From Gekko japonicus (taxonomy: Eukaryota): DNA of 64,000 nt. The translations under genes were made by a program, and so were the position numbers. How positions within the stretch are numbered: the first letter of the stretch is position 1; every line of letters starts with the position of its first letter. The DNA is taken from positions 410,662 through 474,661 of the forward strand of contig NW_015175992.1 of assembly GCF_001447785.1 (NCBI RefSeq). The letters are read 5' to 3'. Below the pieces are notes generated by a model that worked only from the letters and a program-made list of their open reading frames with translations, made no database searches and was not told the origin of the DNA. This document shows positions 813 through 45,135 of this stretch, piece after piece.

Positions 813-2587
813 TTTTTCCCCTTTTTTTTTATAAAACTCTCCTAAAAAGGAGAGAATGTTATTGCTTTTAAAATTTTCAGAAAAAGGGAGGGGTATATAG
901 CGGGATTAAGAATAGTGGTGAGTGATGATTGAATTAGTATATTAATCTTTTGTCAGTAATATTACATTCTGTGGCTTCTTCTGCATTTGACCGATCTTCT
1001 TTCTTCTTTACCTGTCAAAAATAAAGGTGTTAACATATTAGTAATGTCCTTTCGGGTTATTATTAGTATTGTCCTTTAACGCACTTTCTGAAAAGTTTTT
1101 CAGGTGTTGGGGTGTTTTCCTTTTTTATCTCTCAAATTATAGGGTACTCCTCCTACAGCTCCTCCTTCTTCCAGTTTCTTGTCCCCTTCCTCCGAGCCTC
1201 TGTCCTCCTCACTGCTGAATACCTTCCATGTAGCAAGTTCTGCTTCTTCCTCTGAACTGGCGTGCCTCTTCAAAAAGTCTTGGGCTTTGAAAATGGAGTC
1301 TATCTTTTCTCTCTTGTCTTTAAATTTAAAGACAAGTCCTTCTGGAATCAACCATCTGTAGTTAATTTGATGATTTTGCAAGAATGTAGTCAGTCCTTTA
1401 TAAGATTTCCACTTCTTGCGAATTTCAAATGGTACATCTTTTAAAATCCTTATATTCTGTTCTCCAATCTTCAAGGGCTTTGCTGATGTCGCTTTTAAAA
1501 TTTGATCTCTGATGCGTTGTTTGGTAAATTTGACAACCACTTCAGCTGGCAGATTATTTTTCTTTGTAAAATTGGAGTAGGCTCTGTAGGCCAAATCCAT
1601 CTCTTCGCTTAACTTATCCGCTTCACTGCCCATCAGTGGTGCCAAAGCATTTGCCAATATGCTTCTGAGATCTTCCTTCTCAACCTCCTGGATACCTTGA
1701 AATTGGAGAGTTAAATTTGATTTTTCCATCTGTAACATCAGTAACTTGTTTTCTTGTATTTCTTGGTTTTTTTTTCCATTTTATTAATCTTGATTTTTTG
1801 TGTATCTTTCGTTGATACCAGACATTTCTTTGCAATCACCTCCATCTTCTTAGCTGTATCTGTCAATTGTGCCTGTTGATTGCTGAGGACACTTTCTATG
1901 CTAGATAACATTTGGCTGATTTTCTGCATTTGATCCAGCAGGGGGCGAAGCATCTCCTTTTCATGTTGAGTGACAGCCGGCTCTGAAAGGCGGGGGCTAG
2001 GACCGGAAGTTCCCGCCTGCTTCTTCGCCTGCTTCTCCTTCTCCTTCTTTAGCCCCGACATCTTAACTTTTTTGTTTACTTTTTAAAAGTTCATGCCGCG
2101 CGGCTTAGGGATAAATCCCTCTTCGTTGTTTTAAAAGATTTCCCAAAAGGTAACTTTTCTATTCCAAATTTTCACTCCCCCCCCTTCTCGTCATTAACAC
2201 AGTCTCATTCTGTCAGGGGGGGCTATCCACCCTCCTCCCATGCGCTTATCCGGGGGGGGAGAGAACCGCTTAGATTTTCTGATCGTCAACTCACAGTTTG
2301 TAGCCAATTTTGTCTTTTATAATTGCCTTATCGCTCCATCACTCCGAAAAGACTGGTGGTGTTGCTGAGTCCCGTCAGGGCACAACGCGGCGGGGCCTTT
2401 GGGGCATGGGGAAAGCCTCAATTTCCCAACCGTCAGGTCAACAAAGAGGCAGCTCCCTGGTGCGCCCCCTGGTCCGGAGCCTTTACACTAAGGCTCCTAG
2501 GGTCTCCACTTGTGCGGAGTCCCCCCCAACCGTGTGTGGGCATATCGCCTCCGGGAGCGGCATTCGCTTTGCCGTAACCGGAAGTCC
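813..2587 (-). mobile_element. ORF1-only L1-like retroposon (HAL1-like), copy A, full length, in CGAS intron 2
   Basis: 14-bp TSD TATGTTTCAGTTCT (799-812, 2588-2601); 5' end GGACTTCCGGTT; single L1-ORF1-like frame 2061-1100 with one frameshift; A-rich tail; no ORF2. Confidence 0.88.
1100..2061 (-). pseudogene. L1 ORF1p-like protein (coiled coil, RRM, CTD), frameshifted near 1740-1790
   Basis: ORFs 1738-2061 and 1100-1738 join; NLTLQFQG, VVVKF, IRILKDVPFEIR and YRWLIPEGL motifs align with the intact copy at 43758-44720. Confidence 0.85.
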
Positions 2588-4213
2588 TATGTTTCAGTTC
2601 TAATGGTCACAGCCCGCCCAGCCATTTCATTTTAGTAATACATGACTTCTATTTGAGAAGTGGCTTTCAAGGCATATTCCATCGACCATTAGCCAGGAAC
2701 TAATCGAACATTAGCCAGGAACTGGCTGTCACCCCACCCTTGGCTACAGGTGGGGCAAAAGCAGTGTGCATGCATTAGAGGTGGAGTGACCTCCTTCTTG
2801 GTCAGTTCTCTTCTAGCAGCTGCTATTGGAATATTCTCTTAAAACTGTTCTTACCACATCTTACAGAACAAAAAATTATAGCAAGAGTCAACAAGTGTGT
2901 CTAGTGCTATGCATTGTTTAAGACTGTACCTTAAAACCCTCTGAGTAAATAATTTGTTTACAGTCTAACCAAAAAAAAATGTAGTTCTTTTAAACAGTTG
3001 TGTGCTTAATTTGCAATATGATTCTAAACCTGGCCCTACAAGGTGTATTAAAAAGTTTACATAATTGAGCCAAGGACAGAAAGGAAGAAATGAAAAATCC
3101 CAAAAAACATTTTAAATGAGGTTTTATTACACCCTGCACACACACAAAATGAATGTTGGGTGATATCTTACAAGAATATGGTTGACATCGTGGGGTGAGA
3201 GAAAGGCTTGGGAAAGAAAAAGCAGTAATCATGGAGTGGATGGGATTTCCTTCCCTCACAATTTCATGGATCCTCCACTTGTAAAAATATAGACATTACA
3301 TCAACAGAAAATGTCATACCAATTATTATTTAATCTTGAAGGGAAAAGATAGAATATCATGATTATCAAATTCACTTTGATCTTACTGAAACAGGTGGAC
3401 TTTTGTTGTAGAACAATGTGAGATGCTACTTTTAAAAAATCATGACCAGTTAGTGTTCTAAACCAACAAGTGAGCTGTAGCATGCCATAGAAGTCTTTTT
3501 TTAAGGCTAAATGTTCAGAAAACTAAAGAGAAGGAGAGAAATTTGTGTCCAAACTGGCTATTATGCCCACCTTTGCTTTGGTGCAGACTTTTCTGTTGTG
3601 GAAGGACCGTGAATACTAAGCCCCATGTTTGCTTTCAAGCTGGAAAAGCCTCACCTATATATGCAGCCTACTTTCTACTTAATCAGCAGCAATGAAGGTG
3701 GGGAGGGGGGAACACTAATGGTTGCATTAGCTTGAGCAGCAAGGTTTTCTGTGGCTATGTGTTTTCCTTTCTGTGTACAGGAAACCAAGAGAGGCAGTGC
3801 TACTGGTTATTTCTGCATTTGGATGTCTTTATAAGCAACATTTTAACAAGCCAGGAACAAACCATGGTTTAAAATTCTAGCTTAATTTTTATGGACAAAC
3901 AGGAGTTTGTGGTGCAGCCTGCATGAAGGCATTACACTAAACCAATCATGATTTATGAACACATTTTTTTCAATGTCTGACTGCAGCCTAATTCAGATGC
4001 TCACATGCTATCCTGAACACTAGTTTTAAAATTTTTGATTGCCCTTGCCTTGCAGTTTCTGTCCTATGGGAGCAACACAGTTACAAAGACGTTACTGTGC
4101 ACTGGAACATTTGTGATTTTAACTGCGTGCTTAGATTAAAATGAGACTGAAGAATTGACTATGACCAGTATCACTTTTAATCCCCTTTTAATTCTGAATA
4201 AATGAATACTTAC

Positions 4214-4445
4214 CATTTATAGTCTTTACTTCATTTATAATAATGCTCCGCAGTTCTGAAAGGAATTTGGAAGCTGAAAGATATTGCTGATCATCCACGA
4301 AGTCATTTAGTCGCTGTAATCCAGGGTTCCTTTTCAGTTTTACAAAATAATAAACACCCTTGCAGTCACCACCATTATAGGGCTCCAGCTCAACTCTTAC
4401 TCCTGGCACTTTAAGCATAATATCAAATTCATCTGGTTTAGTTAT
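4214..4445 (-). CDS. CGAS: cGAS coding exon 2
   Basis: CAG|ATA acceptor, G|GTAAGT donor; ITKPDEFDIMLK carries the catalytic E/D; YYFVKLKRNP matches the nucleosome arginine-anchor region; 232 nt. Confidence 0.95.
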
Positions 4446-4551
4446 CTGTAAGACAAACATGTTATTTTCTCACCCTTCCAAATTAACTAACAAAAGGATG
4501 AAAAAAATCTACAACAAAATAATTTTTAAAAACTAGACTGCTGACAAACCA

Positions 4552-4750
4552 TCCTGTAGCTCAGTGGTATTGCATCTACTTGGCATGCAAAAGGTCCCAG
4601 GTTCAATCCCTGACATTTCCAGGTAAACGGATCAGGTGGTAGGTGATAGACACCTCCCTAAGACCCCGGAGAGCCACTGCCAGTCTGAGTAGACAGTGCC
4701 GACTCTGATGGACCAAGGGGTTGATTCAGTGAAGGCAGCTTCATGTGCTT
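4552..4750 (+). mobile_element. tRNA-derived squamate SINE (Squam3-like)
   Basis: A box TAGCTCAGTGG and B box GGTTCAATCCC followed by a non-tRNA body and a ...GGCAGCTTCATGTG tail. Confidence 0.7.
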
Positions 4751-5249
4751 AAATGTTCGTTTGATTACTTGCTCAGAACCCAGAGGGATCAACTAATGTC
4801 TTACCAGTGAGAGCGAATGTTGGTCTGATAGTGAGGGATCTCTCTATATTAATAAGAGATGCACACTAACACTGTCTTTGGATTCCAAGTACTCAGCTAT
4901 AAGAAAAGAGCACTCCTTCAACTGAGCAGAAAAGGCAGAAAAATATCTAAAAGTGTATGGCACAAGGCTCTCCGGGAGGGGGGGTATAATAAGCCAAAAT
5001 AATTTCCTCAATGTACATTGTGCTTGTCAGAAGAACACACCCACCCACCCCCTCCCTCCCAAGAAGTATTGCTTGCACACAAAAGCTTATACCAAGAATA
5101 AAACGTTGTTGGTCTTGAAGCTGGAATGGGATTCCAACTTTATTTTCTCTCTCCCCTCCCTCCCCAAAAGAAGAGAAGCAGCCCCGGAGAAGGAAGCAGA
5201 AGGGGTGTGTGTGAGTGAGAGAGAGAGAAAATGAACTTGTCTTTGTATC

Positions 5250-7512
5250 TGTTGTGTAGTGGGTTCGACGCATGAAAGATCACAGAGACGGTGTGCTGCA
5301 GAGCATGGTTTACTGGACACAACACGAACTAACTTCAACAGGGCAGGCGGCCCACTATATACAGAGGCAAAGGGACAACCCTAGGTCCTATTGGTGGGTT
5401 TAAACTTCCTGCCAAAGGTCCTATAGATCCCTGAAGGAAGAGTTCAGGAGCCTAGTCCCTATTCTTGGGACTCCAGCGAGTGCACATATCGCTGCCACCT
5501 GGTGGCGGTCAGCGGACATAACACACACACCCCATAGTTCGAACCCTGCATATGTCACATAGTCCTTCAGGTACGTGGGGGACCGACATTCCCTTGTTGA
5601 CTGCCTTGGGGATGGCACGGGTGACTCATAACTATTTTTCTGTGGTGTCCTCGGGGAAGGTGCTGATATCTCACCCATTTCTGGCAGTGGTTGTGTTTGG
5701 GCCTCTTCTGGTGTCCTCGCAGGCACCGGTGCGCTGACCTCTGGAGCGGCTGCTGGGATGGGGGCTGTTTCCCGTTCCTGGGGAAGCTCCCAGTCTGAAA
5801 CAACATCGGCTGCCCTTTCGGAGACCTGGGCCTCTCTTGCTTCTGGAAGCAGGCGCCACCTCAGCTGGTCCACATGTCTACATAGGACCTGCCCGCAGTC
5901 CGTTGAGACTTCATATGACACTGGTCCCGTGGGGCAGATGATCCTGCCGGTGATCCACTCCAGGCCCTTGCCGTAGTTCTGGACGTAGACGGGATCTTCA
6001 GAGAAGAATCCCCGTGGCGCCTCCCGCTGCTTGGACAGGGTCCGCGACTCTGAAGCCTGGTCCAGGTGTAGGTGGTCTAAAAGGATCGCGGGCCACTGGC
6101 TCATGAGGAGTTCTGCAGGGCTGCGGCCGCTTACCGGGTTGGGGGTAGTCTGTTGTGCCAGGAGGAAGCGGGCCAGGTGGAACTCCCAGTCCCCCTCTGT
6201 CAAGTGGCTGAGGGCTATCTTTGCGGTGCGCACCATGTGTTCCGCTTTGGCCATTCGTTGCGGGGGGGAAGGGAGTCGATCTGATGCTGTGGAGGAACTA
6301 TTGAAATTCCTCTGACGTGAATGCCGTGCCGTTGTCTGAGACAACAGTGTCGGGCAGGCCGTGCGTGGCAAAAATTCGGCGAAGGGCTCGTATGGTCGCC
6401 TTGGAGGAGGTGGTGGAAACCGGGCTAATCTCCAGCCACTTCGAGTAGGAGTCCACAGTCACCAGGAATAACAGTCCATGGAAGGGCCCGGCGAAGTCAA
6501 TATGGAGCCAGGACCAAGGTGTCCATTTGATTCCCATGATTGGGAGGGCGCACTCGGCAGGCTGGGCCAGACTGCCTGGCAGGCCGCACAACGCTTCACC
6601 CAGGCCTCTACTGCGCTGTCGATGCCAGGCCACCAGACGTAGCTGCGGGTGATGGCCTTCATTCTCACGATCCCAGGATGTGCCTCGTGCAGGGCCTGGA
6701 GAACCTGGTGTCGCAAGGCTTGGGGGACCACGACCCTGTCCCCCCACAGCAGGCAGCCCTTGTGCATAGACAGTTCCTCCCTGCGGATCGTGAAGGCAGT
6801 GAATTCTGGCTCCTTCATAGCCACAGGCCACCCCCTTACCACCCAGCCCAGAACCCGGGAGATGATGGGGTCCCAAGCCGAGCTGCAAGCAATGTCCGCT
6901 GCCTGGAGAGGGGTGTCAGGGAGACCTTCAATCACGAGGACATGATGTGCGGGGGCTGGATCATCGTCCACCTCGGGCAAAGGATGGCGGCTGGGGCGTC
7001 GCCGTGTCCCATGACCTTCCCTGGACGATGCTGCAGGGTATAGTTATAGCCTGAGAGGAAAATGGAGCACCGCAAGACCTTTCGGACTTGCGGCATCCGG
7101 CAATCCGCAGCAAAGAGGCAGAGGAGAGGGCGGTGATCGGTGGCGATAGTGAAAGGCCAGCCATAGACAAAATCGTGAAATTTTTTCACTCCGACAACTA
7201 TTGCCAGCCCCTCACGGTTGATCTGGGCGTAGTTTTGTTCGGCCACAGACAGGGCGCGCAAGCAGTATGCCATGGGCACTTCTCTCCCATCCAGGAGGCG
7301 ATGTGCCAGCACTGCACCAATGCCGTATGGAGACGCATCGCACGCCAGGACCACTGGTAACGTTTAATTGAAGTGGGCCAGGACAGAATTTGAAATGAGA
7401 GTTTTAACCCCCCTGAACGCAATGGCCTGGCGCAGGCCCCACGTCCAGGGAGCCTGCTTATCCAACAGTCTGTGCAGGGGTTCAGCTACCACCGCCTTGT
7501 GGGGAAGGAAGG
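5250..7512 (-). mobile_element. Gypsy/Ty3 LTR retrotransposon, 3' part (RNase H, integrase, 3' LTR 5250-5523), decayed and cut by an assembly gap
   Basis: [15 protein letters not shown] (RNase H); HEAHPG...WWPG...CAACQ (integrase HHCC); HIDFAGP...DSYSKW...SDNG (DDE core); LTR bounded by TGTT...AACA; several frameshifts. Confidence 0.88.
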
Positions 7513-7580
7513 NNNNNNNNNNNNNNNNNNNNNNNNNNNNNNNNNNNNNNNNNNNNNNNNNNNNNNNNNNNNNNNNNNNN
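7513..7580. other. Assembly gap (68 N)
   Basis: Run of N. Confidence 1.
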
Positions 7581-7984
7581 TATGCTAGGTTCATTATTTG
7601 GAAAGCAGTTAATGAAAATAATGAACTGCACTATATTAACCTCAGCTTTTTAAATTTTAAATAGTCAATATTCTTGATTAGCTGGACAATTCAGTAGGCA
7701 AAACTAAATGTGTCCACCTTCATTGATGTGGTGTCCACCTTCATTGTTGTGATGTTTATCACATTTGGTTATGTTCCCCATGTGGGCAATATACAAATTT
7801 GTTTCCATTAGGACCAACAAAAGGACTTGTGCCATACAAAATACCTGCCCTATGAAAAGAACAGATGCATTATACAAACACTACTAATTTACAAATGAAT
7901 TTAAGTGTTGTTTTATATATTGTATTTGACATGTTTTACAGAACCATACTAAACCCTTCCCAAATAAGCTGCAGCAAATTATTC

Positions 7985-17180: not shown

Positions 17181-18061
17181 GTCAGAAACCATCATGCAGT
17201 GGTCATAGAGGAAGCTGCTCAGCAACTTTTCAGGCAAGGGGAAGTTTTTGAACCTGGGTCTTTCCTGTTTACAGATCTTCTTCATGGTCTCTGTGCATTA
17301 CACCTATGGGATTATGCACCTGTGTTGATCTGTGTTGATCTGAATCGGTGATATACAAAGCTCACAACGGGATATACAAAGCTCACCACCTCGCTCCCTC
17401 CTGATACAAGAGTTTACCTAGAGGACCTACCTTTTGATGGCCAAGGGCTCTTCCGTGCTTCCACAGATTCGGCCCTGCAGGAAATGGATAAAAGCATTAA
17501 GGCATCTAGGTCATTAGGAGTCTCTGGTCCCCCTAAGCCTTTTTTACCTCGTTCTTGGTCCTGAAACAGTTTTCAATGTCCATTTAATAAACCACCACAA
17601 GACGAAGGCTATAAACCATGGCAGTCTCCATCTGGAAGCAGATGGAGACTGCGAACATCTTCGGGAGGCCACCGCAGCTCCATGTATAACCTGTACTAAT
17701 AGGTTAAAAGATCTATTATTTTAGCTTCTCAGATTGTGATCAGTACTAGTCTTTACCCTATCCCCACTGCGCATGCCCAAGGAGGCGGGGCCAGTTCTCT
17801 TCTGATCGCCGCGCTGTTAACAGTTTGTTTTCTGCCAGTCGGTGAGAAAGTACTTGTCTCTCTTTGAGGGATTGCTCACTGTGTTCATTAGTTTTCGTGG
17901 TTTTTGTCTTTTGTTTTCCTTCTTCTGCTAAAAAAAAAAGACTTTTTGTTTGAGGGTCACCGCTGCCTCTGGTGGTTCCCCCCCCCCCCCGAGGTAAATT
18001 TTAATTTGCCTCATCTGAGGGCTTCTGTTCTGTTTCCTTTTTTGTGCCATCTTTTTGTTTT

Positions 18062-20250
18062 ATGCCCAAAAAGTGGGGGTGTTTCAGAAGTTGTGGCGGG
18101 TGTGGCAGCAAACTTTGTATTATTTGCCTGGGGGAGGCTCATTGCCCAGAGACTTTCCGTCACTGCGCCAAATTTTCCAATCTGACCCGCAAAAACTGGG
18201 CCACAAGGCTCCCTTGTCTGTCAACAATATGTCTACAGAGCCCCCTTCAGATGTCCACCGGACAGACCCTGCATCGATATCGGAGTCGTCGATGTCGATC
18301 CCTCCTCGTCCTAAGGCGACATTGGATGTGGGTACGTCTTTAAAATATCTGGCACCGACAGGGACTTCCTCAGCCTCAACCCCGGCTAAGAGGAACAAGA
18401 AGGAGAAGCACGACAAGAAGAAGTCTGCTTCGAAAAAGACCACGCATAAGTCTCACAGTATGAGCAGCGTTGGTAAGAAACCGGGCTCTGCTCAACCCCC
18501 TATCCAGCGGGCGGAACTCGAAATCGCCAACCCTCCTGAACCGGAGCTGCCTGTTATACCATTGATAGAGTTACTAGACTCGCCTATACAGCAGCTATCA
18601 GAGGCTTCCATTATTGCAAGACATTGATCTCTCTGTTGGAGGTCGTGATTCCACGCAGATCTCATATGGACTATTCACCATCGGTCTCTTCTTGGGCTAG
18701 TGGTCGATCCTGGCCGGACTCTCGATATTGGTGTCCTCGATCCAGATCTCCTAGGCGTGAAGAGCATCGGTTTCGATCAGAGGGATACCCTGAATACTAC
18801 CATTCCAGACCGAGACTACACCGTTTGCCCAGGCGGGAGTCCAGACCACACTCCCCTACCTATTTTGAGCCGCCCATGCCACCTTTGTGGGACCATCGGC
18901 AGCACATGCCTTACTGGTTTGGTTTGTATCCGATGTCAGCACCCATGCCGTGGGGGACGCCTTGGCCTCATTCAGATTGGGACCGCAGATCGCGACGTTC
19001 TCGTTCTCCTCAACGGAGGTCCAGACCATCTCCAAGCCTCCAGAAGACTGTCTGTGTTCTCCTTCTCCGCTTCATCCTAGGCCTACGTTACCATCACAGA
19101 CTGGTCCAGTGGTCCCCACTCCTACCCGAGTGACAGAGGTTCCATCTGTGTCGACACCGATGTCACCTTCCGGATCTTTGGACTCCGATTCAGACACCGA
19201 CGGTTCGGAGCAGCCTGGATCGCCCGAAGACCCTTCAATTCCAAACCCTGCAGTATCGGACAACCTCCCTATATCCCTGTCTGAAGATATTTCTTCTTAT
19301 GGAGAGTTAATCAAACGCATGGTGAATCTGCTAGGACTTTTGATTGTCCAACCCCAGCCGTCGGTGTCGGATGCCATCTTCGATGTCGTACAACTAGACA
19401 CCTCCACACCGATTGCTCTCCCGATGTCGTCCGTGTTACTCCAGGCAGCTAAGGCTCCATGGGACAAACCGTGTTCTGCTCCAGTGTCCTCTCAGTGCTT
19501 GGATCATATGTACCGGATTCAGGAGATGGAGGCTGAATTTCTCCAGCTCCATCCTAAACCCAACTCTATGGTCATGTCATCCTCCTCAAAGAGCAAACGT
19601 AGCTTGGCTACACCTTCGGAAAAGGAGAGTAAAAAACTAGATTCAATGGGACGCCGTTTTTATTCAGCAGGAGCTCTCGGAATTAAAACTTCAAACTACA
19701 TCGCATGCATGGGCTGTTATGAATTCTCGCTCTGGGCGCGTGTTACCAATCTTTTGTCATCGGTACCCGAGGACAAGCATCAAGAGGCCAGGAAACTGCA
19801 AAAGGATGGTACAAACAAATCATAAACTCCTCCAAACATGCCTTAGATACATTTTCAAAAACAATGTCTTCTGCAGTAGCCCTTTGGAGACATTCCTGGC
19901 TCAGAACCACCTCGCTCCCTGCTGATACGAGAGCTTACATAGAGAACCTACCTTTTGATGGCCAAGGGCTCTTCCATGCTTCCACGGATTTGACCCTGCA
20001 GGAAATGGATAAAAGCATTAAGGTGTCTAGGTCATTAGGAGTCTCTGGTCCCTCTAAGCCTTTTCAACCTCGTTCTTGGTCCCGAAACAGTTTTCGATGT
20101 CCATTTAATAAACCACCACCAGACGGGGGCTATAAACCACGGCAGTATCCGTCTGGAAGCAAACAACACTATCAGCCCAGACAAAGTTACGGTACTGGAC
20201 AACAACAGACCAGACCAAAACAACCTAAATCAAACAAACAGGGCCTTTGA
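18062..20250 (+). pseudogene. DIRS gag-like ORF (Cys/His finger, LAP2alpha-like region), disrupted
   Basis: FRSCGGCG...CIICLGEAH...C finger; SSYGELIKRM...IALPM...WDKP; frameshifts and stops. Confidence 0.7.
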
Positions 20251-20251
20251 C

Positions 20252-22100
20252 TTGGTCCTGCCTACCCTTACGGACCCTACCCGTCTCTACCCTTATTTAC
20301 ATGCCTGGACTGCCATTACTTCGGACCAATGGGTCCGTTCCATCTTGACCACCGGCTATTCCATCGAGTTTATAGAGCTTCCACCCCTTTCTGGGGTAGT
20401 CACCACACCCCTGTCGTCATTCCTACTCAAAGAAGTAACCACACTTTTATCGAAGGGTGCTATAGAACCCGTGCCTCTAAATCACCAGGGCCTCGGGTTT
20501 TATTCCAGATACTTCATGGTACCCAAAAGGGACAGCGGACAGAGGCTGATCTTAGACCTCCGTGGCCTCAACGCCTATATACAATGCCAGAAATTCAAGA
20601 TGACATCCCTGCAGGTCATTCTACCTCTCCTGTCCCAAGGCTGTTGGATGGCCACTCTTGACCTCGAAGATGCCTACTTCCATGTAACCATCCACCCCTC
20701 CCATCGAAAGTATCTTCGATTTGTGATAGGGGGCAGCCACTACCAATACAGGAGTCTACCGTTTGGCCTCAGCACAGCACCGCGGGTCTTCACCAAACCG
20801 ATGGTGGTCGTTGTGGCACATCTCCGCCTCTGTGGCCTGACGGTGTTCCCGTAACTAGACCACTGGCTTCTAGTCGCAGCTTCCAGAGACCTTCTTACAG
20901 AACAAGTGTTGCAGGCCTTGGAGGTCCTTTGAAGCCTTGGTCTCCGGGTCAATTACAAAAAATCGCACCTAGTTTAGTCTCAAAGAGTGCAATTTATAGG
21001 AGCAATACTCGACTCTATACAAGGAAAAGCCTTGTATAGAGTCCTGCCCTAAGACCGAGTCCTCACTCTGGCTACTCTTGCTCAACAGATTTGGCTCCAA
21101 GACAGATCACCTGTGTTCCAAATTCTATGCCTACTGGGCATGATAGCAGCTACAACTGTGGTCCTTCGTTCCACAAGGCTACACATGTGTCCATTCCAGC
21201 TCTGGTTCGTACAACATTTCAAACCATTACAAATGACCCAGTGTCCGTCTCTCCCCATCACAAGAGGCACTCGACTCCCTTCTTTGGTGGACACTAACAG
21301 ACAATCTGACACGAGGTGTCTCTTTTCATCCCCTTACTCCTGGTCTCACTCTTACGACCGACGCTTCGCTGTGGGGCTGGGGTGTCCACCTCAACGACCT
21401 CTCCATTGGGCACAAGTGGGACGCTGTGACCTCCAAGAATCATATCAACTTTTTGGAGCTTCTGACCATCAAGCTGGCTCTTCATTGTTTCCAGCCTCTG
21501 CTGCTGGGGAAATCCATGGCTGTATTGACGGACAATACAACGACACTCAGTTACATCAACAGTCAAGGAGAAACAGTCTCCCGCAGTCTCTGTTGCCTAG
21601 CTCTGGACCTTTGGGCCTGGTGCATTCCTCTGCACATATTTCCCATCGCCTCTCACATTGTGGGCAGTGCCAATGTATATGCAGACCTGCCCAGCAGGGG
21701 TCTCTTTCAGCGTCACAACTGGGAGCTGAACTGGGCCTACCTATGCCCCATGTTCCAGAAGTGGGGTACACCTCACATAGACATGTTTGCCACCCGACAC
21801 AATACAAAATGCAATCTATTTTGCTGCAGGGGAGCACAAGATCCCAAGGCCTTGGGAGATGGGCTCCTCTACCCGTGGGACATGGACTTCCTATATATGT
21901 TTCTCTCTCTGCCACTGCTGCTGCAGACAGTCCAAATACTTCTGAGGGTCCACACAAGGTGCATTTTGATTGCTCCCTGGTGGCCAAGGCAACCTTGGTT
22001 CGCCAGTCTCCTCTCCCTAACGAAATCCTGATACCCTCTTCCACAAGTGCCAGATCTGCTTCTGGCGGAGGGAGGAGCACTTTTGTTCCACGAGGTCCAC
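20252..22100 (+). pseudogene. DIRS reverse transcriptase, RNase H and methyltransferase-like domain, disrupted
   Basis: LDLEDAYFH; LPFGLSTAPRVFTK; YLDD mutated to *LDH; HINFLEL...TDNTT; WGTPHIDMFA...APWWPRQPWF. Confidence 0.88.
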
Positions 22101-22139
22101 AAGCTCAAACTAACGGTGTTTCTTGTGGACACGTACATT

Positions 22140-23500
22140 TTTCAAATAGTATTAAAAACGTATTACTCAATGCCAGGAAGAACTCTACCAGATGCTCTTA
22201 CAAAGGAAAATGGTCTAGTTTCCTGGCCTTTTTACAGCCCTCAGGCATGTCTCCGTCTTCTATCACCCTGGATCAGATTCTGGAATTTTTAGTTTCTCTA
22301 GCAGTGAAAGGCCTCTCGCCAGGGGTCGTTTCGTAGAAAAAGAGCTAGGGGAACTCATTAGCATAACTCATTAGCATATGCCACACCCCCTGACATCAGG
22401 GGCCCGGCGGTGGACCTGCAAGGCCGGCGGGAGTGCGAGTAAGTCCCGCCAAGGCCCTCCCTGGCCCCAGGCAGGCAGGGGTGGGGAGAGGCGGGGAGGA
22501 AGCAACTTACCCTCCCTCTTCTCCTGCCCTCTCCTGGCTGAATGAGGGCCGGAAGCGGGGTGGCTGGAAGCAGGGGGCGGGGCTTCATCGTGTGCCCCGC
22601 TCCCGCACCTCACCCGGGGGAACTGCGATCCTCCGCGATCCCCCCCCCCGAATCGACCTCTGCCTCTCGCATTCCTCAATAAGGGTGTAGTTGTCCGCTA
22701 TTTCCACCTACCATCCAGGCTTCGAGGGCTTCTCTGTTTTCTCTCAGCTGGTCTCAAAGACATTCCTGAAGGGTCTCCTACACTTATATCCACCAATCCG
22801 TGTGCCGGTACCCTTGTGGGAATTGCTGCTAGTGCTGTGCCAGCTGATGGGATGACCCTTTGAGCCAATGGCAACCTGCGAGCTAAAACTTGCCGCATGG
22901 AAAACTGCCTTTCTAGTTGCCTTTACCTTAGCCAGCAGGGTGAGCGAACTCATAGCCTTTCATCATGATTCACCTTTCCTTGTCTTCCTACTGGAAGGTG
23001 TGAAATTACCTGACATCTCTTTCCTTCTGAAAGTGATTTCTGAATTCCACCTGAGCTCGGAGATTTTCCTACCAAGTTTCTTTCCTGACCCAAAAGATGG
23101 ACAACAGCGTCTCCTCCATGTACTAGATGTTAAGAGGGTGCTGCTTTCTTACCTGGACAGGACATGTTCAAGTAGGAGGGACAATCACTTATTTGTTTCC
23201 TACTCCAGTCACTCCACAGGACAGAAGATTTTGGCACAACATCTCTCCAAGTGGATTGTTGGGACTATTAAGCTGTGCTACCTGTTGGCTAAATGCCCGT
23301 TACCTTTGCCTGTGCAAGCACGCTCTACAAGATTCTTAGCTACATCTACGGCCTTTCTGAAGGGTGCTTCCCTGTCGGTGATCTGCAGGGCTGCAACATG
23401 GTCTACTCCGGGCACTTTCATCAAGCACTACGCTGTGGATGTTCGTGACCGGCACAGAGTGGACCTTGGTAATCTCGTCCTTTCGTCGGCAGAGCATTGA
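22140..23500 (+). pseudogene. DIRS tyrosine recombinase, disrupted and interrupted by a MITE
   Basis: ARKNSTRCSYKGKW; ASRVSEL; RSTR...ICRAATWSTPGTFIKHY (catalytic Tyr). Confidence 0.85.
22320..22662. mobile_element. hAT-type MITE (343 bp) inserted in the DIRS recombinase
   Basis: 8-bp TSD CCTCTCGC (22312-22319, 22663-22670); imperfect TIRs CAGGGGTCGTTTCG / CGAATCGACCTCTG. Confidence 0.88.
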
Positions 23501-23678: not shown

Positions 23679-25480
23679 TTTTTTATTATTATTTTTATAA
23701 GACTACAAAATACTACAGAAAATAGGGGAGGGGAAACTACATATACGAGGGGGAAAGTAAAGAAACCAACTACTACCTAAAAACCCAAGAGAGGAGATCT
23801 TCAAAAAGCTTAATTACATTAAGTCATAGCTCATTTAAATAAATATGAATTGAGTCAAATATTTCAAACAGTTTCCCTTTTCTTTTAATTTTTTTAAACT
23901 GTCTAAAGACAATTCCCACCAATTATCACATCGTATCAGTTAATTCAAGGCACAATTCAGAGTCCTTCAGCCTTTATTTTTCTCTTCCTTGTCTCTTCCT
24001 CAGTTTATAAGGACTTTTCGGAGCAGCAGCTCCTTGCTCAGTCAGAGAGTCCTCTCCAGAAGATCCCAACTCCAGCTCTCCACTCGAATTGCTGTCATCT
24101 TCCTTTTCTTCTTCCTCTGATTCCTTCTTCCTCTGATTTTCCCAGCTGAACCCTTAGAAACTCTTTGGCTTTAAAAACAGAGTCAATTCTTTCTTTTTTA
24201 TCCTTCATCTTGAAAGTTACGTCTTCCGGAAATAGCCATTTGTATCCAATCGAGTTTGTCTGAAGATAAGTCACCAGCTCTTTATACTTCTTCCTCCTTT
24301 GTCTTATGTCAAATGGAATATCCTTCAGCATTCTGATCTTATGTTTCCCCATTTCCAGGGGTTCTCCAGAAACTGCTTTCAGGATTGCATCCCTTATTCT
24401 CTTCGAGAATCTTACAACAATGTCCCCAGGCAGATTATTCTTTTTTATATAGCCTGAATATGCTCTGTAGACCACATCCATATCGTTTATTTAATAGCGA
24501 TTCTGCCGTCATTTCCATCACTGGGGCGAGCAGTTCACCCATTACTTCTTTAAGATTCTCTCCCAATTTTTCTGGCACACCCTGGAAGCGAAGGACCATG
24601 TTGGCCTTATCCATTTGAATTTGCAGCCATTTATCTTCCATTGAAGTTTGTTTCAATTCCAGCTTTTGGACTTTCTTCTTTACTTTTTGAGTTGTTGCAG
24701 CCACTTCCTAAACTTTTTCATTCTCTTGCTTCATTAGTTGTATCACATTGTTCATTTGGGTTTGCTGCGCTGTCATTGTTTGAGTTACCACCAACATCTG
24801 CTCTTTGAAAGTATTTAGTTGCTCCAGCAGAGTGCGCATGCATTCAGCTACAGATTTAGCCAACTGAGTGGTCACTTCTGGTTTAGGACTATCAAGTCCT
24901 TTTACTTTCGAAATCTTGTCTTTGTCCCTCGTGCCCGCCATCTTTTCTGTTTGTTTACTCTCAGCAAGTTTTTAAAAGTCTCTGAATATGCGCTTGACCA
25001 CTTTACTTCTCTCTGGTGAGTATATCTAGACAGTTTTCTCCGCGTTACTGCTCGCTCCCCCCCTTCCATTTAACAGTTTATGTGCATGGGAGGCATCCCC
25101 CCGCTCGCTTTTTCCCATTCCGTGGGGTAGGGTGGGGAGCGTCTTTTTCTTTTAAAAATCGTTTCTCAGTTGACTCACGTTGGTCATCCGACCACGCTTC
25201 TTGCATCATTTTTAGCGCTCGATCTCCTGCGCTCGACCCGGTTAGCGTCTCTAGTACCATTCGGCCTCTCGGCACGAAGACCCACCAAAGCAAAGGGGCG
25301 CCTCAATTCTCTGGCATTCCGCCATCGAAGAGGCCACCCCTCAAAGCTCCCTGGCCAGGTCCCCTTCATCGGGTCTCTGGGGGGAGCCTGCTCGTCCCCT
25401 CCTTCAGCCGGAGCGCAGAGACACCCCCGGGAGGTCCGGGAGGTGAGTCCGCAGACACGCCACCATCAACCGGAAGTCTC
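23679..25480 (-). mobile_element. ORF1-only L1-like retroposon (HAL1-like), copy B, full length, nested in DIRS
   Basis: 17-bp TSD CGCTTCAGTACTTTTCT (23662-23678, 25481-25497); 5' end GAGACTTCCGGTT; A-rich tail; no ORF2. Confidence 0.88.
23974..24941 (-). pseudogene. L1 ORF1p-like protein of copy B (one stop, two frameshifts)
   Basis: NMVLRFQGV, YRAYS, IRMLKDIPFDIR and YKWLFPE motifs; a 16-nt duplication near 24105-24137 shifts off the tail ...SPYKLRKRQGREK*. Confidence 0.82.
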
Positions 25481-38332: not shown

Positions 38333-38523
38333 GTACTGCCCCTCACTTGAGTCTAAAATTCTGCGTTTTCCAAACCGTGTGCATCAGCTCTGGCTTGAGC
38401 CTGAGGGTCTAGATTCCAATGTCATCTACCCACAGGGAATGTCAATGACGTTGCCATCTGAAATCCAGGAGGAGCTTGTCACTCACATTAGGGGTTTGGA
38501 GAAAGCAAAAATTGTGCAGCCAG
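38333..38523 (+). CDS. MTO1: MTO1 exon 6
   Basis: [12 protein letters not shown]...WLEPEG...[10 protein letters not shown]. Confidence 0.96.
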
Positions 38524-38589
38524 GTAAGATATCACATTTCTCCAATCAAATGAGGCTGTATGTCAGCACCTGGGAGAACATTCTGTATA

Positions 38590-38810
38590 CTTTTATTTAT
38601 TCATTTATACCCCTCTTTTCTCCTTCGTGGGGGAGCCTTAGCTGCTTACATAATTCTCCTCCATTTTATCCTCACAACAACCCTGTGAGGTAGGTTAGAC
38701 TGAGAGAGAGTGACTGGCCCAAGTCACCCGGCATGCTTCCATGGCAAGAGTGGGGGTTCCAACCTGGGTCTCCCAGATCCTAGTCTGACATCCTAACCAC
38801 TACAACCACA
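38590..38810 (-). mobile_element. tRNA-derived SINE with L2-type tail
   Basis: ATTTTATCCTCACAACAACCCTGTGAGG...CTAACCACTAC; related copies at 51715-52450. Confidence 0.6.
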
Positions 38811-38976
38811 ATTGCTCTGTAGTAGTTTAACAGATCTACAAACCCGCACAGTATGGTGCATGTTTTTATGGTCCTGAAATGTGCATGTTCACAGACTTTT
38901 ATCTTGTGAGCATGTTTGTCTGAATCCATGCAGCAAACATTTCCCACATTGATTCCTTTGATTTTGCTTCTCCTAG

Positions 38977-39107
38977 GCTATGGAGTTCAGTATGATTTTC
39001 TGGACCCACGTCAGCTGACTGCCTCCCTTGAGTCTCGTCTTGTTCAGCGGCTCTTCTTCGCAGGACAGATAAATGGCACAACGGGCTATGAGGAGGCTGC
39101 AGCCCAG
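38977..39107 (+). CDS. MTO1: MTO1 exon 7
   Basis: YGVQYDF...[19 protein letters not shown]. Confidence 0.96.
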
Positions 39108-40267
39108 GTTAATGTGTTGGAGAAATTGTGGCAAAAATAGATTTTGCTGGGAAATTTCTTCTGTTGTTGCTAGAGACGTGCAGCCAAAAACTTGACTGGT
39201 TATGTCAAACAATAAGTGATTCCAAATAGGCCAGTCTGGCCTGGGCTCCTCAGGGCTTGGGAGCTGAGCAGGGTCAGCCGTAGTCAGTATTTGGATGGGA
39301 GACCATCAAGGAAATTGGGGATTGTTGCGCAGAGAAAGGCACTGGCAACCACTTCCCCACTCATCACTTGCCTAGAACACCAGTGGTTGGGGTCACAATG
39401 AGTTGGTTGCAACTTGACAGCACATTTTTCTTCACCTCTGATTCTCCTAACCATCCACACCTCCTCTCACAGTCAGTTTTTCTGTCTCAGGCTGTGCTCT
39501 CAGGCCTTTGCCTCTTCCTGTTGTTTTCTGGACCTCTCTGCTTTCCAACTTCCTGTTTTGAGGCCTGTCTTCCAAGGTCACAGGATTGTGATTGTCATTT
39601 TGAGGGGAGGAGGAATGGGAGCCGTTACATGAGCCATGTGCAGGGAGGTGGTGTTGCTGCAGGAGGGCAAAGGTTGAGAGCTCACCCACCCACTGTTGCA
39701 TGAATCAGGTGGGTGGAGCTAGTGGCACTGCCAGTAGTTGGCTGGGAGGATGGTGGGAGCTGATGATGAGTGGGGAGGAAGGGTGGGACAAATCTGGCAG
39801 ATCCCTGCTTGTAAGGTACTTGCTGCAAGCACATTTAGCCCTGTGCTGTGTACCCTTATTCATAAGCTGCTGGATCCTGCACACCTGTTGGCATTCTCTG
39901 TTTGTGTTCACCAGAGAACTACTCTGAAGCAATTTAGTTTGCAGCACCAACTCAAGCAGAGCTACAGTCTTCTAAAGTCATTGACTTCAGTGGACTTCAA
40001 AGAATGTAACTCTAATTACCATAATTATGGTAAATACGGTAGTTGGGCACAATAGCATTTTTCATGTGCATACTACATGAACTGCAGCTCTTAACCTTGG
40101 TTGCAGCGTCTTCGGGTAGACAGAATCTATTATAATACATAATGGCTATGGCTTCAGCAACTTTCCCCCCTCTGAGACCTTATACAAGTACTGGCATTCT
40201 CCGTTTGTAGGAACAGTTTATACTATGGCTTCCCTTTGTCTCCTGAGACCTTGTTGCTCTCCACCAG

Positions 40268-40472
40268 GGTATAATTGCTGGAATCAATGCTGGCCTACGA
40301 GTAAAAGGGAAACCTCCCTTTATCGTCAGTCGTACTGAAGGTTACATTGGCGTTTTGATTGATGATCTCACAACTCTGGGCACTGATGAACCATACCGGA
40401 TGTTCACAAGCCGTGTGGAGTTTCGGATGTCTCTGCGTCCAGATAACGCAGACAGCAGGCTCACCTTCCGAG
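40268..40472 (+). CDS. MTO1: MTO1 exon 8
   Basis: GIIAGINA...[28 protein letters not shown]. Confidence 0.96.
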
Positions 40473-40557
40473 GTAGTGGGTTTGTCCAGCAGTGTTTCTT
40501 TGGCACAGATGATTCTGTCTTCCACTTCTTCTTATTTTTCTCTTTTTGCATTGGAAG

Positions 40558-40729
40558 GCTACGCTGAAGCTGGCTGTGTGTCCCAAAAGCGATATGACCA
40601 AGCCTCTCGGATGAATGCAATGTTGGAAGAAGGAATTGAAGCACTGAAGTCTATTGAGTTCAGCGGCACAAAATGGGCTCGATTGATTCCAGAGGCTACC
40701 ATAAGTACTAATCGCAGCTCACTTCTCAG
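40558..40729 (+). CDS. MTO1: MTO1 exon 9
   Basis: [12 protein letters not shown]...; follows an 85-nt intron. Confidence 0.9.
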
Positions 40730-41669
40730 GTATTGGCTGGCCCTTTCTGCTCTTCTGGGGGTTATTTCAATGAGGCCTCAAAAGAACTGTGGTATTGAAA
40801 CACTGTATCCTGTGTTCTTGTTCTGTCATATTGGGCTCAGTCTACAAAGTTGGGCAAAGAACGTATTGGGCTCAGTCTACAAAGTTCTCTGCCTGTGGAA
40901 AAGAGAGGAGCAATGTCCTTGTTTCCTTTTCTTCTTTGCCTCAGCCTTTCTTTGTATAGATGAGACCCCGAACTGGTCTCTGAGTCAGGTGCTCTTTGCT
41001 GAAAGAATCAGTGAGATGAGCAGCATTTACAATAAGATCATCTGTCCTATAGAAACAAATTGTTAAATTGAAAATTGAAAGTAACGCAGTCCTTCGCCTA
41101 GTTCCATCTTTAGTTTTTTTTTCTCACATGATCAACATCTTGATACAAAATTTATTTATTTATTTATTTATTGTCTGATTTATACCCTGCCCTCCCCGCA
41201 AGCAGGCTCAGGGCGGCTTCCAATAACATAAATACATGATAAAAACATACATAATACAGATTAAAACATAACAGTTAAAATAATACATTACAAAGTGCTG
41301 GCGGCAGTTAAAATTTAATCAAGAGGAATGCTTTCAGATGGGTTTCCAGCTTCCAGCATAAAAGTGCCTAGATGTTACTCTGCTCATCAACTCTTATGAC
41401 AGCTGCTCAATGATGACTTTGCGGGCCATGTGCTGTGGTGGCGGCGGCCCCGAATTATATGCCTGGCAGAAGAGCTCCGTCTTGCAGTCTCTGCGGAACT
41501 GTGAAAGGTCTCGCAGGGCACTGATCTCCTCCGGGAGCTTGTTTCACCAGGTAGGGATCGCCACCGAAATTGAAGCCGTGTGTGTGAGAATGAGAGAGAG
41601 AACTGCAATATAAACTGGGGCTCTTTCACTGGGTCTTTTTTCTCCTTGGAAGAAATAACTGACATAATA

Positions 41670-43476
41670 GTCATAGAATCATATAGTTGGAAGGGACCTC
41701 CAGGGTCATCTAGTCCAACCCCCTGCACAAAAACCTCCCCCTCCACACCCGAAGTGACTGCTGTTCCACGTCCAGTTGATGACAAAAAACCTCCAGGATC
41801 CCTGGCCAAACCAGGCTGGAGAAAAATTGCTTCCTGACCCCAAAGTGGCAATCAGTATTCCCTGGGTGTGAAAGAAAGGGCCTTCCTGCCCTCCCTCTCA
41901 TGATCTGCCTAAATTCACAGAATCCGCATTGCTGTCAGATGATCACCTAGCCTCTCTTTGAAAACCTCCAAAGAAGGAGAGCCCAGCACCTCCCGAGGGA
42001 GCCTGTTCCACTGAGGAACTGCTCTGTCGGGAAGTTCTTCCTAATGTTTAGCCAAAAACTCTTTTAATTCCAACCCATTGGTTCTGGGGCAACAGAAAAC
42101 AACTCTGTACCATCCTCTTTATGACAGCCCTTTAAGTCCTTGAAGATAGTTATCATATCACCTCTCAGTCATCTCCAGGTTAAACATACCCAGCTCCTTC
42201 AACCTTTCCTCATAGGACTTGGTCTCCAGACCCCTCACCATCTTTGTTGCGCTCCTCTGGATACGTTCCAGCTTGTCTATATCCTCCTTAAATTATGGTG
42301 CCCAAAACTGAACACAATACTCTAGGTGAGGTCTAACCAGAGCAAAGTGGTACCATCCGCATGATCTGGACACTATACTTCTGTTGATGCAACCCAAAAT
42401 TGCATTTTCCTTTTTAGCAATCACATCGCACTGCTGACTCATGTTCAGTGTATGATCTACTAAGACCCTTAGATCCTTTTCACACATACTATTGCCAAGC
42501 CTCCCCCAACCTATAATTATGTATTTGATTTTTCCTACCGAAATGCAGAACTTTACATTTATCCCCATTGAAAGTCATTAAATTTCTTTTAGCCCAGTTT
42601 TCCAGCCTGTCAAGATGATCCTGTATCCTGTATCCTACCCCTCCCAATTTAGTATCATCTGCAAATTTAATAAGCATTCCCTCTATCCCTTCATCCAAAT
42701 CATTGATAAAGATGTTGAACAAAATAGGTCCCAGGACAGATCCCTGAGGCACTTGTCACTCCTCTCCAAGAGGATGAGGAACCATTCACAAGCACTCTTT
42801 GGGTGCGATCTGTCAACCCGTTACAGATCCACCTAACAGTCATAGGATCCAAACCACATTTTTCCAATTTGTCAACAAGAATATTATGTGGAACCTTATC
42901 AAAAGCCTTATTGAGATCAAGATAAACTATGTCTATAGCATTCCCCTGATCCTGCAAGGTAGTAACTTTCTCAAAAAGTGAGATACGGTTAGTCTGACAT
43001 GACTTGTTCTTGAGAAACCCATGCTGGCTCTTAGTAATTACAGCCATCCTTTCTAAATGCTCAAGGTCTGTTTGATGATTTGTTCTAAAACTTTCCCAGG
43101 TAACGACATCAAGCTGACGGGTCAGTAGTTACCCAGATCCTCCTTTTTCTCCTTCTCCAGTCTTCTGGCACCTCACCTGTTCTCCAAGAATTCTCAAAAA
43201 TAATGGACAGAGGCTTCCACTTCGGCGAAAGGGCAGGATAAAAGCCAAATAAATAAATAAATCCACAAGTCCGTTTAGTACCCTTGGATGCAGCTCATCT
43301 GTCCCCAAGGACTTAGTTACATTTAAAGAAACTAGTGTTTATGTACTACCCCATGCCGATCCTAGGCTGCAACTCTCTTCCCTCATCATGTGTTCTGTTT
43401 TTGCCATATTGAACACTGTTTCCCTTGCAAGAGAAGACTGAGGAAAAATAGGAATTGAGCAGTTCTGCGCTCTCTC
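41670..43476 (-). mobile_element. CR1 LINE (ORF2 RT, internally deleted) in MTO1 intron 9, interrupted by HAL1-like copy C
   Basis: QHGFLKNKSCQTN; DIVYLDLNKAFDKVPH; [17 protein letters not shown]; KFADDTKL; TCTATGA tail. Confidence 0.9.
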
Positions 43477-45135
43477 TTTTTTTAAAAAATTGTTTTATTC
43501 CCTCTCCTAAAAAGGAGAGATATTTCGCTTAAAATTCAGAAAAATAGGGAAGGTATATAGAGGGATAAAGAACAGAGTTGAGTGGTGTTAGTGTATTAGT
43601 ATATTATTCCTTTAGTATTAAAAATTAAGGTCAATAATTTCTTCTGCAGTCAGGCGCTCTTCTTTTCTTCTGTATCTGTTAACAAAAGCAATTAATATGT
43701 TAGTACTGTCCTTCTGAGATTAATTTCCCTTTCAAAGTGTAGTCCAAAAGAAGAAACTTAAACTTTGGCATCTTTTCCTCTTTTTTCTCTCAGGTTATAT
43801 TTCGAACCCGTCGCTCCTTTAGCTTCCTCGTCTTTCACCTCTCCCTCCGAGCTGCTGTCTTCCCCGCTTAATCCCGACATCCACTTGGCCAGTTCTGCCT
43901 TTTCTTCTTTGCTGGTGTGCCTTTTCAAAAAATCTTGAGCCTTGAATATAGAGTCTATCTTTTCTCTTTTATCCTTAAACTTAAAAACCAGTCCTTCGGG
44001 CACCAACAATTTATAACTCGTTTGATGATTTTGTAAGAACATGGTCAATCCTTTATATTCCTTTCTTTTCATTCTGATTTCAAATGGAACATCTTTCAAA
44101 ATCCTGATCGGTTGGTCTCCAATTTTCAGGGGCGTTGCTGATGCCACCTTTAAAATCTGGTCCCTGAGACGTTGCTTTGTGAATTTCACAACCACTTCTG
44201 CTGGCAACTTATTTTTCTTCGTAAAATTGGAATAGGCCCTATAAGCCAAATCCAATTCTTCTTTTATTTTTTCCGCTTCGTTGCCAGTCAGTGGTGCTAA
44301 AGCCGCTGGCAAAATGTCTCTTAGGTCCTCTCCATTCTCTTCTTTCAGTCCCTGAAATCGGAGAGTTAAATTTGCTTTCTCCATTTGAAGCATTAGCAAT
44401 TTATTGTCTTGTTTTTCTTGATGTTTTTCCACTTTGATGACCTTCTTCTTAACTTTCTGTACTTCTTCTGCTGATGCCAGGCATTTCTTTGCAATATCGT
44501 CTACCTTTTCGGCTGTCTCTGTCATCTTCTTCTGTTGAAGACCATAGGCACTTTCCATAGAATCTAGTTTTAGGTTGATTTTTTGCAGTTCCTCCAGCAG
44601 ATGGCGTGCAAGATCACCTTCTTGTTGATTGACAGCAGTTCCAGCAGGGGAAGGGCTTGGACAGGAAGTCCCTCCCATCTTCTTCATCTGCTTCTCTAGT
44701 AGTTTTCTCGGCCCCACCATATTGCAACTTTGTTTACACTTTAAAAGTTCTTGCCGTAACTCTCAGGGATGGCTCCCTCCTCTCCGCGTTCTTCTCCCTC
44801 TCAGAAGGTAATGCGTTTTTTCAATTTTTTGCTTCGCCCCTCCCTTGCCTTTAAAAAGTCTCTTATTCATATGGGGGGGAATCCTCCCTCCCTTCCGCTT
44901 CTTGGGGGGGTGAAGCCCTTTTATGCCGCCGCTTTTATTTTGAACGCCAACTTACGGTTCATCGCTTGTCTCGTTGATGTGACTTAACTTTAGCGCTCCA
45001 CCACCCCGCTGTTCCGGTGGCGTTGCTAGTCCCCATAAGGGGCAAGTCGCAGCCGGGGCCGTTTGGGGTAGAGGGAGAGCCTCAATTCCCGACCTTCTGG
45101 TCGGCAAGAGGCTTCTCCCCAAAGCACCCCCTTTC
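43477..45135 (-). mobile_element. ORF1-only L1-like retroposon (HAL1-like), copy C, about 115 nt 5'-truncated
   Basis: 5' and 3' UTRs homologous to copy A; AATAAA plus A tail; no ORF2; no TSD visible. Confidence 0.85.
43758..44720 (-). CDS. Intact 320-aa L1 ORF1p-like protein (coiled coil, RRM, CTD, acidic/basic tail)
   Basis: Open from ATG 44720 to stop; heptad-rich N-half; NLTLRFQGL, LAYRAYS, VVVKF, IRILKDVPFEIRMKR, YKLLVPEGLVFK. Confidence 0.85.
   Translation of the reverse strand: MVGPRKLLEKQMKKMGGTSCPSPSPAGTAVNQQEGDLARHLLEELQKINLKLDSMESAYGLQQKKMTETAEKVDDIAKKCLASAEEVQKVKKKVIKVEKHQEKQDNKLLMLQMEKANLTLRFQGLKEENGEDLRDILPAALAPLTGNEAEKIKEELDLAYRAYSNFTKKNKLPAEVVVKFTKQRLRDQILKVASATPLKIGDQPIRILKDVPFEIRMKRKEYKGLTMFLQNHQTSYKLLVPEGLVFKFKDKREKIDSIFKAQDFLKRHTSKEEKAELAKWMSGLSGEDSSSEGEVKDEEAKGATGSKYNLREKRGKDAKV

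Follow-up and report, generated by a model that had tools for sequence, protein, structure and literature searches.

We analyzed a stretch of 64,000 nt from the genome of Gekko japonicus (assembly GCF_001447785.1, contig NW_015175992.1, positions 410,662-474,661), hereafter called the window, and all positions given below refer to it. The window contains three copies, designated A, B and C, of a compact retroposon with a single open reading frame (ORF), ORF1, for a protein of the type encoded as ORF1p by the retrotransposon LINE-1 (L1). All three copies are oriented on the minus strand. A first-pass annotation of this DNA had placed them at the right coordinates and lengths and left their strand unstated. 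Most probably, A, B and C are non-autonomous half-L1 (HAL1-type) retroposons of the L1 clade, with the following layout.

2587..813, minus strand: copy A, a complete ORF1-only retroposon of 1775 bp, its ends set by target-site duplications (TSDs)
2587-2062, 2061-1100 and 1099-813, minus strand: 5' untranslated region (5'UTR), ORF1 and 3'UTR of copy A, with the A tail at the end
2601-2588, minus strand: 5' copy of the TSD of A, AGAACTGAAACATA, identical to the 3' copy at 14/14 positions
812-799, minus strand: 3' copy of the TSD of A, 14 bp, directly against the end of the element
25480..23679, minus strand: copy B, a complete ORF1-only retroposon of a distant subfamily, 1802 bp, its ends set by TSDs
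25480-24942 and 24941-23977, minus strand: 5'UTR of copy B and its ORF1 in four pieces, followed by the 3'UTR and an A-rich tail
25497-25481, minus strand: 5' copy of the TSD of B, AGAAAAGTACTGAAGCG, identical to the 3' copy at 17/17 positions
23678-23662, minus strand: 3' copy of the TSD of B, 17 bp
about 45135-43477, minus strand: copy C, 5'-truncated, without TSD, collinear with A
44720..43758, minus strand: open ORF1 of copy C, 320 codons

The 5'UTRs of 526 nt in A and 539 nt in B have a GC content of 52-55%, in agreement with the GC-rich leader of about 530 nt first described. The ratio of observed to expected CpG in the 5'UTRs is 0.74-0.83, as compared to 0.38 for the whole window. The 3'UTRs of the three copies measure 281-295 nt, close to the initial estimate of 270-300 nt, and contain an AATAAA-type signal followed by a short A tail. 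The TSDs of A and B are perfect over 14 and 17 bp, as had been claimed, and between them each copy holds one ORF and neither an endonuclease (EN) nor a reverse transcriptase (RT) gene, so the statement that the units lack ORF2 was also correct. A tblastn search of the window with a protein that combines ORF1 and EN matched with the ORF1 part alone, and no vestige of EN was found downstream of ORF1. The full-length unit represented by A and B codes for ORF1p only, which is the defining property of a HAL1-type element.

Copy C aligns to A from 45132 to 43502, the similarity to A ending at 45132, and its first ~115 nt are missing, including the terminal motif described below. An A tail is present, and no TSD was found when one was sought in the flanks. 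The upstream flank of C was compared with the starts (~120 nt) of A and B and was no more similar to them than shuffled sequences were. The dissimilarity of this flank to the start of A and B, together with the lack of a TSD, indicates that C has been 5'-truncated by about 115 nt. An assembly gap (a run of N at 7513-7580) lies outside all three copies (distances of 4.9 kb to A and 16 kb to B), and no result presented here relies on continuity across it.

Reads and contigs from four runs of the same species were aligned to positions 300-3100; two of these (X5 and X12) are DNA runs from one study, and X21 is an RNA run. X5 and X12 each contained one contig that joined position 798 to position 2588, skipping 1789 bp; 14 letters at the joint are compatible with either side. 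The skipped segment equals element A plus one copy of its TSD and the contig thus represents an exact empty site. In both runs, the filled junctions were also covered by error-free contigs (2509/2510-2634 and 752-863), at about half the depth of the flanks. The depth in X5 was 80.9 at the empty joint and 73.1 at the filled junction, as compared to 115-134 in the flanks. The occurrence of empty and filled alleles at these depths indicates that insertion A is segregating or heterozygous, and the exact empty site shows that the 1.78-kb unit itself has transposed recently. Copy A is neither a deleted L1 nor an assembly artefact, and the earlier claim that these elements moved as short units and not as deleted L1s is borne out for this copy.

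The ORF of copy C codes for a true L1-type ORF1p with a coiled coil, an RNA recognition motif (RRM) and a C-terminal domain (CTD), as judged by both sequence profile and fold. A phmmer search against the PDB sequences matched human LINE-1 ORF1p (2ykp, E=5e-6, residues 71-249), and a profile of 71 homologues matched 2ykp at 1.4e-15 and 2ldy, an RRM-CTD chain of L1 ORF1p, at 3.4e-14. The identity to human ORF1p is only 19%. The fold was taken from the alignment-based AlphaFold2 (AF2) model, with a predicted local distance difference test score (pLDDT) of 85.7, whereas the single-sequence model (pLDDT 46.8) was unusable. In the alignment-based model, residues 37-116 form a helix that corresponds to the coiled coil, residues 119-209 the RRM and residues 213-268 the CTD. 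The N-terminus is disordered, and the C-terminus is an acidic tail with a PYxLR-type end (KYNLR). In a Foldseek search with this model, the ten best matches were all LINE-1 ORF1p chains, including a chain of the human trimer (2yko_A, E=5e-11, target-normalised TM score 0.76).

A model of three copies of the protein scored 0.74, as compared to 0.00 for the best control, and displayed heptad-spaced contacts at residues 37-115, a result that may reflect memory of the solved human trimer. Three runs shared at least 92% of the contacts, and the pLDDT of the partner chains was at least 81. The mark used for the three-copy score had been calibrated on two copies, where 21 of 30 proteins solved as pairs attained it and none of 23 solved as single chains did. 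The model thus suggests a likeness to the ORF1p trimer and is not proof of binding.

The first-pass annotation had proposed one ORF of about 320 codons per copy. This holds for C, in which the frame is open over 320 codons, and not for A or B. Copy A contains one frameshift, within a run of A near 1775-1783, and copy B contains one stop codon at 24710-24708 and three frameshifts. Ten residues are near-invariant in the family, and copy C has kept nine of them; the exception is a leucine at position 238 (44007-44009), where 69 of 71 sequences have a tryptophan. Even the open frame of C may therefore code for a protein that does not work. Copy A has a tryptophan at the near-invariant R219 (1409-1411), and nearly all related DNA and RNA reads have an Arg codon there (at place 1411). 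The segregating copy thus carries two private lesions, the replacement of R219 and the frameshift. Antisense open frames in the 5'UTRs have no ATG and lie in GC-rich surroundings; they were taken to be open by chance.

The three copies differ widely in sequence. The identity between A and C amounts to 69% over 1684 nt, and the two copies are collinear throughout, also at the ORF1 stop and along the entire 3'UTR. The match of B to A or C is confined to the ORF core, at 65-67% identity, its 3'UTR could not be aligned with those of A and C (z about 1), and its 5'UTR has only short blocks in common with theirs (z 3.5-4.6, above all shuffles). This agrees with the earlier description of A and C as relatives and of B as a distant subfamily with a different 3'UTR.

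Substitution rates were calculated from codon alignments of the ORF pieces, with the breaks skipped. The first-pass annotation had named a ratio of nonsynonymous to synonymous rates (dN/dS) of about 1 as evidence against its proposal; between A and C the ratio is 0.16-0.30 overall, far below this value. The identity of A and C at codon positions 1, 2 and 3 is 0.78, 0.79 and 0.54 (z 7.5). By domain, dN/dS is 0.08-0.18 in the RRM and CTD and 0.31-0.47 in the coiled coil. Between B and A or C, dS is saturated, and the identities at the three codon positions are 0.58, 0.67 and 0.35. ORF1 has been under long-term purifying selection.

Given that the collinearity of A and C extends through the ORF1 stop and the 3'UTR, their common ancestor would most simply already have been ORF1-only, and the selection on ORF1 would then have acted within a non-autonomous lineage. 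The common ancestor that includes B was probably ORF1-only as well. The UTRs of A and C are 73-80% identical, which is above the identity at third codon positions and points to either cis-acting constraint or a later exchange of UTRs. Although the 3'UTRs of A and C are only 80% identical, both contain an identical 7-bp hairpin, CUCUCCU UUUU AGGAGAG, before the poly(A) signal (838-856 in A and 43508-43526 in C). It did not fold significantly better than shuffled sequences and is absent from B, and we make no claim for its function.

An exhaustive protein search yielded 334 relatives of this ORF1p. Two word-indexed protein searches, the second of them profile-based, returned only the relatives P0001 and P0002, and the second gave no additional members of the clade described below. 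The nearest named relatives are from squamates, as the first-pass annotation had anticipated: two Gekko japonicus proteins, a protein of Micrurus named for an "L1 RRM domain", and a fusion of ORF1 with an endonuclease domain from Pantherophis. The ORF1p-like proteins P0005, P0008 and P0036 carry misleading names, "apolipoprotein A-IV-like" in Gekko japonicus and "ubiquitin-conjugating enzyme E2 E2 isoform X2" for the Pantherophis fusion. Such names in gecko and snake annotations likely represent mis-annotated LINE genes.

In an unrooted tree of 81 sequences made by a quick method, A and C group together, with 95 in the Shimodaira-Hasegawa-like approximate likelihood ratio test (SH-aLRT), and join B and P0002 in a clade with a support of 99 and a stem of 0.69. 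This clade is separate from the 77 other ORF1p sequences, including the snake fusion of ORF1 and EN. Its members A, B, C and P0002/P0151 have an acidic, serine-rich tail that ends in (K/P)Y(N/K)LR, here abbreviated PYxLR, and PYxLR was not found as a tail motif in the other 148 ORF1p relatives compared. The motif is located as follows.

43788-43799, minus strand: PYxLR tail motif of copy C
1130-1141, minus strand: PYxLR tail motif of copy A
24002-24013, minus strand: PYxLR tail motif of copy B

The two complete copies also begin alike.

2576-2586, minus strand: GACTTCCGGTT, an 11-mer that spans nt 2-12 of copy A; putative element of an internal promoter
25478-25468, minus strand: exact match to GACTTCCGGTT at nt 3-13 of copy B

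This 11-mer is all that A and B share in their first 120 nt, and these are its only two exact matches in the window. It may represent an ETS-type site (CCGGAAGT on the opposite strand) and contribute to an internal promoter by which the start of transcription is set. Other blocks are kept in all three 5'UTRs, namely GCCTCTT, GAATTGAGGC, GGAGCGCTAA and GTGAGT, as well as GTAAACAAA immediately before the ATG. At the other side of integration, the TSD of A (14 bp) starts at TT|AGAA and that of B (17 bp) at AG|AAAA. Judged by sequence, the combination of A tails, variable TSDs of 14-17 bp and A-rich nick sites is the signature of L1. No L1 ORF2 or EN was found anywhere in the 64-kb window. An L1 partner would presumably supply RT and EN, and nothing found here favours Tx1 over L1 in this role.

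The abundance of related sequences was gauged by summed word depth at a likeness of at least 90%. The depth reached 188,664 in bin 1240-1333, within the CTD, as compared to approximately 115 in the flanks. The depth of the element was up to ~1600 times that of the flanks, a value that is not a copy number, and in part of the 5'UTR it was 3-5 times that of the flanks. On this reading of word depth, many related copies share the conserved parts of the ORF and few belong to the subfamily of A itself. In the RNA run X21, 382 reads matched the element, all at 90-99% likeness, and none matched the flanks. Relatives of copy A are transcribed.

The following features were identified in the surroundings of the three copies.

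28588-50492, plus strand: exons of MTO1 (MnmG-type), identified by tblastn with E. coli MnmG
42293-43470, minus strand: fragment of a CR1-like LINE with an RVT_1 domain (Pfam) and a FADD motif (frames 43308..42293), its start immediately adjacent to the A tail of copy C
5421-7594, minus strand: pol gene of a long terminal repeat (LTR) retroelement, with an integrase core (PF00665) at 6298-6888 and the N gap 7513-7580 inside one frame
18055-23500, plus strand: run of long ORFs with an RT domain (PF00078) at 20252-20854
45712-46008, plus strand, and 46430-46998, minus strand: fragments upstream of copy C with VTSRLDYCN- and LHWLPV-type motifs, interpreted by eye as 3' coding ends of L2-type LINEs
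58451-58849, minus strand: EEF1A-like ORF with an EF-Tu GTP-binding domain (PF00009, E=1.8e-17)

Copy C is located antisense within an MTO1 intron flanked by exons 40256-40465 and 49495-49650, whereas A and B lie upstream of MTO1, amid other repeats. The upstream part of the CR1-like fragment was not found 5' of C, which argues that C is no simple interruption of that fragment. The run of long ORFs on the plus strand includes an ORF of 210 codons (22868-23500) to which no Pfam name could be given; the TSD of copy B lies ~160 bp downstream of it.

If A, B and C are HAL1-type retroposons, their life cycle could be as follows. Transcription from a CpG-rich internal promoter, located in the ~530-nt 5'UTR, would yield a polyadenylated RNA of ~1.8 kb that starts 1-3 nt upstream of GACTTCCGGTT. 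This RNA would code only for an L1-type ORF1p, in which a trimeric coiled coil is followed by an RRM and a CTD, and the protein would coat its own RNA in cis. The resulting particle would borrow ORF2p, the endonuclease and reverse transcriptase of an autonomous L1 encoded elsewhere in the genome. ORF2p would then nick an A-rich target and prime on the A tail, leaving TSDs of 14-17 bp. HAL1 elements have been described as mammalian non-autonomous derivatives of L1 that code only for ORF1p and have several origins (PMC5753468, citing Smit 1999, and Bao and Jurka 2010).

A further-reaching proposal, which we put forward tentatively and would not be surprised to see fail, is that the ORF1-only state is ancient and monophyletic. 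The elements would then form a lineage of L1 parasites with an ORF1p clade and an acidic PYxLR tail of their own and their own promoter at GACTTCCGGTT, and would now rank among the most abundant L1-type elements of this genome and still be active. This would mean that an ancient ORF1-only lineage has been maintained under purifying selection, independently of any one L1 family, and that the element's own ORF1p is its means of competing for a foreign ORF2p.

Several observations speak against these interpretations. The autonomous partner has neither been found in the window nor been linked to the elements by sequence, and the empty-site data come from a single study. The LINE-1 ORF1p organisation put forward by the first-pass annotation agrees with the PDB profile, AF2 and Foldseek results and falls short in Pfam, where copy C scores 13.7 bits with PF02994 (Transposase_22; E=0.084), below the cut-off of 22.4. 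The relatives P0003-P0012 score 18-24 bits, and the ORF1 is best classed as a divergent PF02994-type member, its homology being carried by the profile match to the PDB. With broken ORFs in A and B, the replacement R219W in A and W238L in C, a working protein from any of the three copies is putative. None of the X21 reads were at least 99% alike to copy A, and no pile-up of read starts or ends was seen among them. Some of these reads continue through a genomic A tail, and the RNA of the relatives may stem from read-through transcription of other copies. The contigs of the DNA runs within the repeat are only ~110-130 nt long, with 318 loose ends, and are too short to show a majority of copies without ORF2. 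Finally, the 3'UTR of B is unrelated to those of A and C, and the descent of all three from one ORF1-only ancestor is therefore putative.

This last observation also fits the alternative that survives best, which is that the copies are recurrent by-products, each type going back to its own autonomous L1 family, in which ORF2 was lost through an internal deletion or spliced out, as in spliced L1 copies that have integrated, and the selection on ORF1 and the UTRs having acted in the autonomous parents. Several independent origins are reported for the HAL1s of mammals (PMC5753468, citing Bao and Jurka 2010), and many diverged L1 lineages are reported from non-mammalian genomes (PMC5381506), both of which are compatible with such an origin. 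We nevertheless consider it unlikely. A and C keep the same order of parts along the entire unit at near-saturated synonymous divergence, and two separate losses of ORF2 would need to have had identical boundaries. Moreover, the short unit has itself retrotransposed recently, there is no vestige of EN after ORF1, and the ORF1 clade with its PYxLR tail stands apart from all other ORF1p found, including the protein with ORF1 and EN.

A second alternative accepts that the elements are non-autonomous and assigns the enzyme to a partner other than L1, either another LINE clade that uses poly(A), such as Tx1, or an unrecognized enzyme. The first-pass annotation had left the choice between L1 and Tx1 open, no partner was found in the window, and the LINE fragments that were found there are CR1-like and L2-like. 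However, insertions of the CR1 and L2 types are not known to carry poly(A) tails or long TSDs, and Tx1 elements insert at specific targets. Since the A tails, the variable TSDs of 14-17 bp and the A-rich nick sites are those of L1, and the ORF1p is itself of the L1 type, a partner outside L1 is very improbable.

The weakest alternative regards the copies not as a transposon family but as processed retrocopies from at least one host gene domesticated from ORF1; it has a precedent in L1TD1 (PMC4161310) and would fit both the purifying selection on the ORF and the annotation of the gecko relatives as ordinary genes, but is hardly credible given that three lineages at synonymous saturation have each made TSD-flanked copies with conserved 5' termini, that word depth suggests hundreds or more related copies, that the 5'UTR moves with the copies and starts with the same motif, as for an internal promoter, and that "apolipoprotein A-IV-like" is an evident misnaming of coiled-coil proteins.

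We found no description of HAL1 or of an ORF1-only L1 in lizards or snakes in the searchable literature, and the first-pass annotation had likewise been aware of none in lizards; the elements may already have been catalogued in Repbase or Dfam. Non-autonomous forms are not mentioned in a review of vertebrate L1 (PMC5381506). New here are the empty-site allele, the domain-wise dN/dS, the conserved 5' terminus, and the tail motif together with the distinct ORF1p clade that bears it. The results address the question of why L1 needs ORF1p although Alu and SVA can move without it. An element that has lost ORF2, keeps ORF1 under strong purifying selection in lineages at synonymous saturation and continues to insert is a natural experiment on the role of ORF1p in cis in capturing ORF2p in trans. 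Half elements may also account for part of the L1 annotation in squamate genomes, and the mis-named ORF1p genes in gecko and snake annotations may be of the half-L1 type. The polymorphic copy A could be used as a population marker.

As probable non-autonomous HAL1-type retroposons, the gecko elements can be compared with four known systems. They resemble mammalian HAL1 in coding only for ORF1p and in having their own 5'UTR, a poly(A) end, L1-type TSDs and a presumed use of ORF2p in trans. They differ from it in that the host is of the squamate type, in that several lineages at synonymous saturation coexist, with one copy segregating, and in that their ORF1p, with its PYxLR tail, makes up a separate clade; mammalian HAL1 has a known L1 parent, and for the gecko elements an L1 parent is presumed. 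With autonomous LINE-1 (2yko/2ykp; 2ldy) they share the order of coiled coil, RRM and CTD by profile and fold, and, in a model, possibly a trimer, as well as a coiled coil that is less constrained than the RRM and CTD, a CpG-rich 5'UTR, an A tail and TSDs. Unlike autonomous LINE-1, they lack ORF2 with its EN and RT, measure 1.8 kb instead of about 6 kb, and have an extra acidic tail with a PYxLR end. Alu and SVA are likewise mobilised in trans by the ORF2p of L1 by way of a poly(A) end, with L1-type TSDs, as is likely for the gecko elements, but encode no protein, whereas the gecko elements have retained an ORF1p gene under selection. Finally, L1TD1 (PMC4161310) is also an ORF1p-derived protein without ORF2. 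It is, however, encoded by a single-copy host gene, whereas the gecko elements are multi-copy, TSD-flanked and polymorphic.

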